Positions 58,257 through 61,546 of a stretch of DNA of 64,000 nucleotides are shown piece after piece. The notes under the pieces were generated by a model that was not told where the DNA came from, searched no databases, and worked only from the letters and a program-made list of their open reading frames with translations. The position numbers and the translations under genes are program-made. The stretch lies in the sequence record NC_047713.1; one strand, written 5' to 3'. Each line of letters starts with the position of its first letter. Positions within the stretch are counted from its first letter, which is position 1.

Positions 58257-58530
58257 AACTATTAGAGTATTGGTCTTGACCAATGGAAAAGTCCTTATCA
58301 GTAAGATCGAAGAGATAGGAGGTGCTGATATCGGGGAGCCAGACTGCCGTCTAACCGACCCAGTATGGTATAATGATGAGGTGGAGGAAATGACCGAAGG
58401 GTTCAAACGCTTTCCTGGTAAGGGGATCACACCCGATACCAAGTTGGCCATCTCTTCTGTCAATATCTTGACTCTGGTTACCCCAGATAACAAACTCCTC
58501 AGTGAATACCTCGTGTTTATTAGTGATTAA
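58249..58530 (+). CDS. Small Sm/SH3-like barrel hypothetical protein (93 aa)
   Basis: RVLVLTNGKVLISKI, GEPDCRLTDP, I.S..ILTLVTP...L..EY. Coupled to gp43A. Confidence 0.7.
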   Translation: MDETIRVLVLTNGKVLISKIEEIGGADIGEPDCRLTDPVWYNDEVEEMTEGFKRFPGKGITPDTKLAISSVNILTLVTPDNKLLSEYLVFISD

Positions 58531-60005
58531 TGTCTAACAAGTTCTACACCAATGTTCAGCTTTATGGTAACAACATCCTCCTACGCGGGTATGAGAACGG
58601 AGAGAAGTTCCACACTAGGGAACAATACTCTCCTACACTATATGTGAGTTCCAAGAAACCCAGTAAGTGGAAAACACTTACTGGTGAGAATGTTCAACCA
58701 GTGAATCCCGGATCTATTAGAGATTGTAGGGATTTTATCAAGAAGTATAAAGATGTAGAGAACTTTAATGTGTTTGGTAATGAGAGGTTTGCCTTTCAAT
58801 ACATTGCAGACAACTATCCTGGGGAGATTGAATATGATCCCCAGTTGATTAATATCTTGAGTTTGGATATTGAGGTTGAGTCTGAACATGGTTTCCCAGA
58901 TCCAGAGTCTGCTAATGAGGAAGTACTACTCATTACTATTCAGGACTATGTTACCAAACAAATCATTACTTGGGGTCAGATAAAGCATGGGGAGTTTGAT
59001 AACCAACAGGATAATGTAGATTTCCGTCCATGTGAGAGTGAGTATCACCTACTGAGTGCCTTTATTCAGTGGTGGCAACAGAACCCACCTGATGTTATCA
59101 CTGGGTGGAACATTGACTATTATGATATTCCATACCTCGTCAGACGCATGAAGAGAGTGTTGGGTGATAAACTAGCAAGCACTATCTCCCCTTGGAAGTT
59201 CGTAACAGATGAAGAGCACTTCTTCAAAGGTATGAATAAACTATACTACAATATTGCTGGTATTACCCAACTAGACTACCTAGTTCTATACACTAAGTTC
59301 ACATATACGAACCAAGAGTCATACAGACTAGACCACATTGCTAATGTGGAGTTGGGTCAGCAGAAGTTAGACCACTCTGAGTTTGAAACTTTCAAAGACT
59401 TCTACCGAAAAGGTTGGCAGAAGTTTGTAGAATACAACATTGTTGACGTGGAACTGGTTGACAGGATGGAAGAGAAGTTGAAACTCATTGACCTTGCCAT
59501 CACTATGGCGTTCGATGCCAAGGTTAACTTCCAGGATGTATTCTCACAGGTGAGACTATGGGATACTATTATCTACAACTATCTCAGAGATAGAAACATT
59601 GTTATCCCCCAGAAGGAACAAACCAGTAAGAGTGAGAAGTTCGCTGGAGCATATGTAAAAGAACCCAAACCCGGTCTATATGAATGGGTAGTGTCCTTTG
59701 ACCTTAACTCCCTGTATCCTCACCTACTAATGCAATACAACATCTCTCCAGAAACATTGATGGAAGAGAGGTGTCCTAATATCTCCATTGAAAAGGTTCT
59801 CAATGAAGAAGTAACCTTTGAGATGTATAAAGACTATGCTGTTTGTCCTAATGGGGCAATGTATCGCAAAGATGTCCGCGGGTTCCTACCAACCCTAATG
59901 GAAAAGATGTATGATGAACGAAAGGCGTTCAAACAAAAGATGTTGAAGTCCAAACAAATCCTCGTTGATATCGAGGCTGAAATGAAAAGAAGAGGTGTAT
60001 TATGA
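58530..60005 (+). CDS. gp43A: DNA polymerase gp43, N-terminal half (exonuclease, motif A, first fingers helix)
   Basis: ExoI LDIEVES, ExoII VITGWNIDYYDIPY, ExoIII YNIVDV, motif A SFDLNSLYP, MYDERKAFKQKM, then a TGA stop. Confidence 0.93.
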   Translation: MSNKFYTNVQLYGNNILLRGYENGEKFHTREQYSPTLYVSSKKPSKWKTLTGENVQPVNPGSIRDCRDFIKKYKDVENFNVFGNERFAFQYIADNYPGEIEYDPQLINILSLDIEVESEHGFPDPESANEEVLLITIQDYVTKQIITWGQIKHGEFDNQQDNVDFRPCESEYHLLSAFIQWWQQNPPDVITGWNIDYYDIPYLVRRMKRVLGDKLASTISPWKFVTDEEHFFKGMNKLYYNIAGITQLDYLVLYTKFTYTNQESYRLDHIANVELGQQKLDHSEFETFKDFYRKGWQKFVEYNIVDVELVDRMEEKLKLIDLAITMAFDAKVNFQDVFSQVRLWDTIIYNYLRDRNIVIPQKEQTSKSEKFAGAYVKEPKPGLYEWVVSFDLNSLYPHLLMQYNISPETLMEERCPNISIEKVLNEEVTFEMYKDYAVCPNGAMYRKDVRGFLPTLMEKMYDERKAFKQKMLKSKQILVDIEAEMKRRGVL

Positions 60006-60160
60006 GTTTTCGTCACAAAACATATGGTGGTCTAGTTCATTATGACCACAATGATAAGATTATCGTCATTGAACGTCGATTGAATCCAATGCAACATCAC
60101 GCTATGCTTGTGAGTAAGTTGAAGGAAGAGTATCCAGAGTATCAAGTAGTTACTGGATAG
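60002..60160 (+). CDS. Micro-ORF inside the split gp43 (52 aa; not in the ORF track)
   Basis: MSFRHKTYGGLVHYDHNDKIIVIERRLNPMQHHAMLVSKLKEEYPEYQVVTG. ATGA overlap with the gp43A stop and a GAGGT RBS 5 nt upstream. Confidence 0.65.
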   Translation: MSFRHKTYGGLVHYDHNDKIIVIERRLNPMQHHAMLVSKLKEEYPEYQVVTG

Positions 60161-60375
60161 TGAGTGGTTTAGTTGCTGAGATTATGCAAGTCGTTACTAT
60201 GATTACTATGCTATTCAATATGTGCAATAGTAATGAGTTCAACAGACAAGCATGTATGAAAGACTGGGATACTTGGTTATTACCTGAGATATCCCGTGCG
60301 TGGCAAATTAAAACAGGTCAGGAAGCCCCTTACCAAAACGAGGAAGATGTGGTAGAATGGCACCAACAGCAGTGA
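60160..60375 (+). CDS. Second small ORF inside the split gp43 (71 aa; hydrophobic N-terminus, two Cys)
   Basis: GTG overlapping the previous TAG (an ATG at 60184 is the alternative). Contains MQVVTMITMLFNMC...ACMKDWDTWLLPEI.RAW. Confidence 0.6.
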   Translation: MSGLVAEIMQVVTMITMLFNMCNSNEFNRQACMKDWDTWLLPEISRAWQIKTGQEAPYQNEEDVVEWHQQQ

Positions 60376-60382
60376 GGTTATT

Positions 60383-61546
60383 ATTGGGTATCTGATCGGT
60401 GGAGCTGGTGAAGGACCTGATGAGGAGATCATTCAGTCGGATAGTGACTATTCTAAACTATCTGATAAACAACTGATCTACCTGCGTGGGCAAACTATTA
60501 AAGATATTGCGAAGTATCATAACTTCCAGCAAGTGAGAAAGATTACTCTAAACTCCGCTTATGGTGCTTTGGGTAACCAATACTTCAGATACTACAAACT
60601 GGCGAACGCAGAGGCAGTGACCTTCTCTGGTCAGTTGAGTATCCGTTGGATTGAGAATAAGATGAATGGATTCATCAATGAGATTTTAAAAACAGAGGGT
60701 AAGGATTATGTGATCGCCTCTGATACTGACTCTATCTACATTAACTTTGGTGATGTGGTGGATAAGTTCCTGAAGAAGTTTGATGGTGATAAAGAGAAGA
60801 CTGTATCAATGGTAGACAAGATCTGTAAGGATCAACTAGAACCATTCATTGATAAGTGTTATGCTCATTTGGGTGAGTATGTGAATGCATACGAACAGAA
60901 GATGCAGATGAAGAGAGAGAATATTGCTGATCGTGGTATCTGGACAGCGAAGAAGAGATATATCCTGAATGTATGGGATAGTGAGGGTGTTCGTTATGAG
61001 GAACCCAAACTGAAGATGATGGGTATCGAAGCAGTTAAGTCCTCTACACCTGCTCCCTGTAGAACTATGATTAAGGATGCTCTCCGTATTATCATTGAGA
61101 AATCTGAGGATGAGGTGATTGATTATATTGAGGATTGTAGGAGGAAGTTTAATAAGATGAAACCAGAGGAGATTGCGTTTCCTCGTTCCGTTAGTGATAT
61201 GATCAAGTTTCGTTCTGGAACAACAATATATGCTAAGAGTACTCCTATGCATGTGAGGGGAGCGTTACTATTCAATCATCACATTAAGAAGGGTGGGTTG
61301 GAGAATAAGTATTCTCTCATCAATAGTGGTGAGAAGATCAAGTTCTGTTACCTCAAGATTCCTAATCTAATTGGTGAGAATGTTATCTCATTCATCTCTG
61401 ATTTCCCTAGGGAACTTAAGTTGGAGAAGTATGTTGATTATGATACCCAATTCAATAAAGCATTCCTAGATCCACTTAAGATCATCTTGGATGCTATTGG
61501 TTGGAACTGTGAGAAGCAGATGTCCTTGGAGTCATTTTTCACCTGA
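60383..61546 (+). CDS. gp43B: DNA polymerase gp43, C-terminal half (second fingers helix, palm motifs B/C, thumb); probable ATT start
   Basis: Motif B QQVRKITLNSAYG, motif C ASDTDSIY, KKRY, KMMGIE. The frame is open from 60356 and the first canonical start (GTG 60533) lies inside motif B's helix. A GAGGT RBS at 60374-78 precedes ATT 60383. The gene call is high confidence; the start is moderate. Confidence 0.85.
   Translation: MGYLIGGAGEGPDEEIIQSDSDYSKLSDKQLIYLRGQTIKDIAKYHNFQQVRKITLNSAYGALGNQYFRYYKLANAEAVTFSGQLSIRWIENKMNGFINEILKTEGKDYVIASDTDSIYINFGDVVDKFLKKFDGDKEKTVSMVDKICKDQLEPFIDKCYAHLGEYVNAYEQKMQMKRENIADRGIWTAKKRYILNVWDSEGVRYEEPKLKMMGIEAVKSSTPAPCRTMIKDALRIIIEKSEDEVIDYIEDCRRKFNKMKPEEIAFPRSVSDMIKFRSGTTIYAKSTPMHVRGALLFNHHIKKGGLENKYSLINSGEKIKFCYLKIPNLIGENVISFISDFPRELKLEKYVDYDTQFNKAFLDPLKIILDAIGWNCEKQMSLESFFT

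Follow-up and report, generated by a model that had tools for sequence, protein, structure and literature searches.

A T4-type DNA polymerase gene divided at the fingertip in Synechococcus phage ACG-2014f and its marine relatives

Division of the T4-type replicative DNA polymerase gp43 between two genes, gp43A and gp43B, has been described in the Aeromonas phages 44RR2.8t and 25 (Petrov et al., 2006, 2010, as summarised in PMC2988022 and PMC2677866). According to PMC2988022, citing Petrov et al. (2010), the split polymerase of phage 25 co-purifies and has polymerase activity. A two-chain T4-type polymerase has so far been documented biochemically only for a few Aeromonas phages, and full-text literature searches found no note of a split gp43 in cyanophages, nor is it mentioned in the S-N03/S-H34 genome paper. 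Here a locus of this kind is described from a 64,000-nt stretch of sequence record NC_047713.1 (the window), in which region 58530-61546 is that of Synechococcus phage ACG-2014f_Syn7803C8 (KJ019058; Kyanoviridae, Atlauavirus) at 100% identity, the KJ019058 coordinate being the window coordinate + 62000. GenBank already annotates two 'gp43 DNA polymerase' coding sequences (CDSs), and two cultured cyanophage genera have this architecture as a fixed trait, which is also abundant in ocean viromes.

A polymerase in two cistrons

The polymerase is coded by two co-oriented cistrons, gp43A at 58530-60005 followed by a gp43B frame that in the list of open reading frames (ORFs) is open from 60356 and ends at 61546. 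The parts of the two halves are as follows.

58530-60005, plus strand: gp43A, 491 aa; N-terminal domain, 3'-5' exonuclease (Exo I-III), first part of the palm with motif A, first long fingers helix
58863-58883, plus strand: Exo I, LDIEVES, in gp43A
59103-59138, plus strand: Exo II, GWNIDYYDIPYL, in gp43A
59433-59459, plus strand: Exo III, YNIVDVELV, in gp43A
59697-59726, plus strand: motif A, FDLNSLYPHL, in gp43A
59916-59942, plus strand: ERKAFKQKM, first fingers helix, in gp43A
59958-60002, plus strand: gp43A tail, ILVDIEAEMKRRGVL, distal end of fingers helix 1; invariant in 10 ACG-2014f isolates
60383-61546, plus strand: gp43B, 387 aa from 60383; fingertip loop, second fingers helix with motif B, palm with motif C (DTDS), KKRY, thumb, clamp-binding tail
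60536-60574, plus strand: motif B, RKITLNSAYGALG, in gp43B
60713-60739, plus strand: motif C, IASDTDSIY, in gp43B
60944-60967, plus strand: KKRY, in gp43B
61523-61543, plus strand: C-terminal SLESFFT, in gp43B

Pfam places DNA_pol_B_exo1 and the first part of DNA_pol_B in gp43A (PF03104; PF00136, positions 19-142) and the rest of DNA_pol_B in gp43B, while PHROGs holds a separate family for each half, phrog_2062, which gp43A matches end-to-end, and phrog_1918 for gp43B. gp43A, which ends ...LVDIEAEMKRRGVL (AEMKRRGVL, then the stop codon), can be aligned to T4 polymerase as far as residue 490 and to RB69 polymerase to residue 493, with gp43B alignable to RB69 polymerase from residue ~550. The first-pass annotation had proposed that gp43 is split at the tip of the fingers into two genes, and on this point the ORFs, motif positions, Pfam, PHROGs and the T4/RB69 alignments agree. 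It had also judged both halves intact with all Exo and Pol motifs, in keeping with which every motif was located and pN/pS is 0.022 in the gp43A core and 0.045 in the gp43B core (these and all later pN/pS values and variable-site counts come from 10 ACG-2014f isolates). Both cores are under strong purifying selection. An assembly error, the artefact that might have produced such a split, is effectively excluded, since KJ019058 matches at 100% identity, the arrangement is identical in 45/45 ACG-2014f genomes of the phage collection, deposited as isolates (93-100% identity), and split halves also occur on hundreds of independent metagenomic contigs.

The locus very probably encodes a two-subunit family-B replicative polymerase of the T4 gp43 type, with its gene interrupted in the loop that joins the two long antiparallel fingers helices at their tip. 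From gp43A would come the exonuclease and N-terminal domains, fingers helix 1 and the palm strand bearing the motif-A aspartate; from gp43B would come fingers helix 2 with the Lys/Asn/Tyr of motif B, the DTD of motif C, KKRY, the thumb and the C-terminus that binds the clamp. The catalytic site would then be composite, with motif A from gp43A and motifs B and C from gp43B, such that the chains must associate and neither would be active alone. They presumably do so as the corresponding parts of the single-chain enzyme do, by way of a common palm sheet and the pairing of the fingers helices. That gp43A and gp43B form an obligate heterodimer is inferred because the active site is split by homology to T4/RB69 and because the split enzyme of phage 25 co-purifies in active form. 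The four cistrons lie on one strand in the order gp43A-ORF52-ORF71-gp43B with stop/start overlap or near-abutment (ATGA; TAGTG; TGA-G-GTT-ATT-ATT), and no plus-strand terminator was found between them, promoter and terminator counts being no higher than shuffled expectation. This co-orientation, the overlapping or abutting stop/starts and the lack of a terminator between cistrons point to co-transcription and translational coupling, and the four would be translated as one coupled operon.

Two points weigh against this picture of the enzyme. In the present genome the gp43B frame has no ATG, GTG or TTG before GTG 60533, and AlphaFold2 single-chain confidence is low in the palm and fingers parts of both halves, the interface thus being a predicted one. 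Modelled alone, gp43A has good N-terminal and exonuclease domains, a poor palm part and a single long C-terminal helix (residues 452-487) that reaches the C-terminus with low-to-moderate confidence, and gp43B alone has a mean pLDDT of 58, with residues 1-87 below 50, a model too poor to bear on the head or the interface.

The fingertip break compared with known enzymes

Profile alignment places the break at the fingers tip at the position of the 43A/43B junction of Aeromonas phage 44RR2.8t, in which 43A (498 aa) and 43B (391 aa) are separated by a 49-nt spacer. The cyanophage gp43A profile covers 44RR gp43A residues 1-495 of 498 with the tail included (...kqklvdieaelkkrgvk vs ...IRNQEAIKKILASRGVK), while the gp43B profile matches 44RR gp43B from residue 18 (node 24 onward) and T4 gp43 from residue 516 (node 15 onward), the gp43B head corresponding to T4 residues 516-560. 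The gp43A tail is likewise homologous to those of Makaravirus gp43A, metagenomic split gp43A and Aeromonas 44RR gp43A (...AIKKILASRGVK...). From ERKAFKQKM/QRKDWKKKM to motif B the two pieces total 85 aa vs 90 aa in T4, and the tails reach only ~15 and ~25 aa beyond the helices. The resemblance to the Aeromonas gp43A/gp43B enzymes noticed at first pass is thus borne out by the shared break, but the idea that each half had gained a novel helical extension, and with it a new interface, is not supported, since the ends align to the fingers helices of T4 and to the 43A/43B ends of 44RR and the break falls in the loop of a pre-existing long hairpin.

It is the fused cyanophage enzymes that have the unusual tip. 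Over the comparable span the fused fingertip is 31 aa shorter (54 aa vs 85 aa), and the distance from GFLP to motif B is exactly 54 aa in 61/63 fused IMG/VR loci. The other two (L058, L059) have a 68-aa intermediate tip with split-type sequence on both sides (...KQKLVDIESKLK...TIKDIAKFNNFQ). On these alignments the supposed extensions can be recognised as the ancestral long fingers helices of the T4 type, with the shorter tip belonging to the fused cyanophage enzymes.

The architecture is that of the known 44RR type and no new kind of system, the extras being its ocean abundance, the cargo slot and the missing canonical start. Like the polymerases of 44RR2.8t and phage 25 it is a T4-family PolB with the same fingertip cut (498 + 391 vs 491 + 387 aa), homologous A tails (...RGV...) and B heads (...LS-D-L...), adjacent and co-oriented cistrons and the same division of motifs, with Exo I-III and motif A on chain 1 and motifs B and C, KKRY and the clamp-binding tail on chain 2. 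It differs in belonging to Kyanoviridae on Synechococcus rather than Straboviridae on Aeromonas, and in its gp43B, which lacks both an intron and a canonical start codon. The junctions also differ: the spacer in 44RR is 49 nt of untranslated sequence, the gap in ACG-2014f is two translated small genes, and in most marine relatives stop and start overlap directly. Phage 25, like some of the marine relatives, has a free-standing homing endonuclease gene there.

The single-chain gp43 of T4 and RB69 (1IG9, 1CLQ, 9E5Y) shares all motifs and domains, and the joined ACG-2014f pieces rebuild the long T4-type fingers, the difference being one polypeptide against a chain broken in the fingertip loop. 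The fused gp43 of most cultured cyanomyoviruses (Syn9, S-CAM9, S-SSM7, S-CAM7 and others) is 57-69% identical over both halves and lies in the same neighbourhood of regA, hsp20, gp43, uvsX and gp41, but is a single chain with the shorter fingertip. Finally, Aeh1 nrdA/mobE and T4 gene 60/39 with mobA are likewise essential enzyme genes in two cistrons with products that reassemble, at sites that can hold a homing endonuclease; they differ in that the ACG-2014f slot holds two small non-nuclease ORFs.

The gap between the halves and the start of gp43B

The first-pass annotation correctly put motifs B and C in a separate downstream ORF, but missed two coding ORFs in the interval of about 380 nt. 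The 378 nt between the halves are two selected small genes rather than spacer, and both products are conserved across the ACG-2014f population.

60002-60160, plus strand: ORF52, 52 codons; ATG overlaps the gp43A stop (ATGA); phrog_3538 (E 6e-43)
60160-60375, plus strand: ORF71, 71 codons; GTG overlaps the ORF52 stop (TAGTG); TGA at 60373-60375; phrog_3571 and phrog_703
60374-60385, plus strand: gp43B initiation region; Shine-Dalgarno-like GAGG at 60374-60377, GTT at 60377, ATT at 60380, ATT at 60383

ORF52, whose ATG has an AGAGG 8 nt upstream within the coding DNA of the gp43A tail, has just 2 variable sites in 156 nt and encodes a protein identical in 44/45 ACG-2014f genomes; its homologues in Makaravirus phages sit elsewhere, adjoining a DNA adenine methylase gene. 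ORF71 has a pN/pS of 0.16 and belongs to a family (phrog_703) of cyanophage proteins of ~65-80 aa in whose alignment an N-terminal hydrophobic helix and two conserved Cys are seen, so that its product is probably a small membrane-anchored protein. In Makaravirus too (S-H34, S-N03 and MC09 among them) the two polymerase halves flank an ORF71 homologue, while the family is mostly free-standing, as after mazG in Syn1 and S-IOM18, in the replication module of S-CRES1 and in most IMG/VR loci. Family members share a motif W-L-x-P-E...P-Y-Q-x-E and are usually found in replication or recombination modules (loci L007-L033). Neither ORF52 nor ORF71 has a nuclease-family match in Pfam or PHROGs, the gap thus holding no endonuclease gene here, and the two are most likely cargo.

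The ORF52-ORF71 insert is flanked by a near-repeat, GAGGT(G)TATTAT(G/T), at 59993-60006 and 60374-60386. This may be left over from the entry of a cassette into the gp43A/gp43B junction; chance or functional convergence could also account for it, since the repeat includes the Shine-Dalgarno and start context. A duplicated A-tail/B-head segment was considered and dropped as too weak, the 12/13-nt near-repeat at the insert ends being suggestive only.

The start of gp43B in KJ019058 is annotated in GenBank at GTG 60533 (337 aa). The peptide quoted for gp43B at first pass, GYLIGGAGEGPDEE..., is indeed in frame, but the present genome has no canonical start in that frame ahead of GTG 60533. In a metagenome search with gp43B (7,696 clusters at E <= 1e-10, proteins of 214-680 aa) the best 120 were inspected and are almost all complete proteins of 384-392 aa with 70-96% identity and the head covered. 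Among these best 120 of 7,696 matches, 90 begin M-GYLIGG and 9 V-GYLIGG, and about 16 begin five codons earlier, with Ile in place of the conserved Met. The conserved Met position is 60383, which is ATT in the present genome and ATC in other ACG-2014f haplotypes, while the metagenomic protein P0001 (96% identity) has a Met start at its equivalent. Read in frame, the head itself (60377-60532) has a pN/pS of 0.19, vs 2.0 and 3.0 when it is read in the two alternative frames. Codon 60377 is GTG in 4/10 isolates and GTT in 6/10, the present genome included, while codon 60533, which lies inside conserved polymerase sequence, is GTG in 3/10 and GTA or GTT in 7/10. Upstream of ATT 60383 lie an invariant GAGG at 5 nt and the ORF71 stop at 7 nt, and the ORF71/gp43B boundary has no unusual RNA fold (z-score -0.2 for 60330-60430). 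The IMG/VR contig L055 is a second, independent case without a canonical gp43B start at the conserved position.

The in-frame constraint, the N-terminal alignment, the conserved Met position and the presence of GTG 60533 in just 3/10 isolates together argue that gp43B starts near 60383, upstream of the annotated GTG, and initiation would be at AUU, possibly by reinitiation after ORF71. A +1 frameshift from ORF71 into gp43B was considered and rejected, as the frames overlap by just 7 codons and there is no slippery or re-pairing site at CAG-UGA. The annotated gp43B starts vary among near-identical ACG-2014f records (KJ019058, KJ019059, KJ019098, KJ019102, KJ019144 and others; L001, L034-L041), giving proteins of 389, 337 or 325 aa from starts equivalent to 60377, 60533 or 60569, the shortest beginning inside motif B. 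Some GenBank gp43B starts thus cut motif B. Since g43 serves as a marker gene, surveys and gene callers should expect two cistrons.

The gp43B head is also a diversity hot spot, with 43 variable sites in 156 nt and a pS of 0.41 vs 0.11-0.13 in the flanking cores, while the 39 nt just before it (60340-60378) do not vary, a pattern suggestive of mosaicism or recombination at the junction.

Marine relatives, rival readings and the history of the junction

A second cultured lineage, the Makaravirus phages S-H34, S-N03, ME01, MA01, MA10 and MC09, is split at the same break, with a gp43A of 488 aa (ending ...EIKRRGL), an ORF71 homologue of 81 aa and a gp43B of 366 aa that starts MDLTSLSNEDL. On contigs of metagenomic gp43B relatives a 487-aa gp43A is followed by gp43B at once, or by a 65-aa or a 155-aa ORF and then gp43B. 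A DNA-pattern scan of IMG/VR for split heads was used as a sample of at least 120 matches, from which no total is drawn, and among the matches listed genuine MGYLIGG gp43B starts were present in 88/120. The gp43A tail was recognisable at 70 loci among those matches, 54 of which have a one-base stop/start overlap (TAATG type) with the halves in different frames, while the remaining 16 carry inserts of 154-1457 nt. Homing-endonuclease-like genes occupy the slot in L046, L055 and L082, an endonuclease-like ORF in L019 and small ORFs of other kinds in L042 and L051. For the 174-aa ORF of L019 a GIY-YIG label was rejected, given a weak helix-turn-helix match only in Pfam and a weak homing endonuclease match in PHROGs, and it is called endonuclease-like only. 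purM (AIR synthetase; phrog_1207, E 7e-183) lies between gp43A and gp43B in L054 (2535-3467) and also in L130 and L188, an auxiliary metabolic gene inside the polymerase operon.

On these comparisons the gp43A/gp43B junction is a cargo slot whose commonest state is empty, with ORF52 and ORF71 of ACG-2014f as one derived state. The endonuclease-like genes in the slots of relatives are consistent with a past role of an endonuclease in the split.

Phage polymerase genes can contain introns and inteins. The 43B gene of Aeromonas phage 25 has a group I intron, and cyanophage-like gp41 and NrdA are described as fractured genes that carry split inteins (Dassa et al., 2009). The 378 nt might likewise be an intron, or the halves might carry a split intein, with a single chain restored at the RNA or protein level. 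This is highly improbable. A permissive Rfam scan (E up to 10) of 59500-61000 found no group I or II intron, its two matches being at chance level and to unrelated families; the insert consists of two ORFs under purifying selection; and the abutting halves of the 54/70 related loci, in different frames, leave no room for an intron. Splicing of 60005-60383, which the first-pass annotation had asked to see excluded, is on this sequence evidence effectively ruled out. As for an intein, Pfam finds only polymerase domains and no intein/Hint domain in either half, the tails of ~15 and 25 aa are explained by homology to the T4 and 44RR fingers, and no Cys/Ser/Thr splice-junction pattern was seen by eye at the A tail RRGVL or the B head GYLIGG. 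A decaying pseudogene, with replication by another polymerase, is hardly credible either: the canonical gp43B start is lost in the present haplotype, but both cores are strongly constrained with every catalytic motif intact, and the arrangement is fixed in 45 genomes, widespread in nature and active with the same architecture in Aeromonas phages.

The remaining alternatives concern the junction itself. A true gp43B start at GTG 60533, with the upstream stretch untranslated and the second fingers helix truncated, has in its favour that this is the first canonical start in the frame and the one annotated by GenBank, yet it is very unlikely, as the upstream stretch is constrained in the gp43B frame only and aligns with the N-termini of more than 100 relatives and with T4, 13 conserved residues of the motif-B helix would be lost, and in the 7/10 isolates with GTA or GTT annotators picked a start inside motif B. 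ORF71, alone or together with ORF52, might also be a functional third component of the split polymerase, either an assembly factor or a subunit. A homologue lies between the halves in two genera (Atlauavirus and Makaravirus), ORF71 is under purifying selection with family members elsewhere in replication modules, and its stop is 1-7 nt from the candidate gp43B starts, so that gp43B translation may depend on it. Against this, most split loci have an empty slot or unrelated genes, polymerase halves are absent from the flanks (up to 3 kb per side, shorter at contig ends) of the closest ORF71 homologues (L012-L018, 46-52% identity), and the hydrophobic helix and Cys pair are more like a small membrane or secreted protein. 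Such a component is thus improbable, and a role for ORF71 in the translation or assembly of gp43B is a minority possibility beside the preferred reading of a two-chain enzyme with cargo at its junction.

When 90 rows of the gp43B core are placed in a quick maximum-likelihood tree with T4 and 44RR as the root, split enzymes are scattered among fused ones, with a minimum of 12 changes between the two states, of which starred branches force at least 5. One well-supported clade (96*) mixes the split L046, L042 and L051 with the intermediate-fused L059 and the short-fused S-B05. This pattern could reflect repeated fission and fusion or, more likely, the exchange of fingertips by recombination, and local mosaicism of the latter kind fits the raised pS of the gp43B head.

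A more speculative extension, put forward only tentatively, is that gp43B is started at AUU in dependence on ORF71 translation and, more broadly, that the split long-fingered form is the older and the fused short form derived. gp43B would then be made only by termination-reinitiation or by a Shine-Dalgarno-assisted start at AUU 60383/60380 after the ORF71 stop, and synthesis of half of the replicative polymerase would depend on the translation of an inserted cargo gene. The fused short-fingered gp43 would have arisen by deletion across the junction, with L058 and L059 looking like intermediates, and the junction would persist as a landing pad, exchanged by recombination, for homing endonucleases and cargo genes. 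The natural fingertip series (fused-long, split, split with cargo, fused-intermediate and fused-short) may offer a way to learn how fission and fusion are tolerated in an essential enzyme, and how homing endonucleases and small genes settle at such a site.

Marine gp43 also has a second, different split site right behind motif A (NISPETL), where an HNH endonuclease gene parts the two halves (L071, L088); the B cores of L088 and the fused L114 are almost identical. The tails at this site (…NNRIAELEKML, then the stop, and …REEIVEELDALKRVREL…) are lacking in ordinary fused enzymes, while the fused 867-aa polymerase of S-CAM7 (L249, 2992-5595) has the same extra helical segment as the splits at this site, unsplit. 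The annotated polymerase of S-B05 (L002, MK799832; 1958-3838) has 626 aa, with ~218 residues missing from its start; its immediate upstream neighbour carries a baseplate-protein annotation, and the 5.5-kb locus has no match to the gp43 N-terminus. In the record of MC09 (PP110486) the product names look shifted by one CDS around the polymerase.

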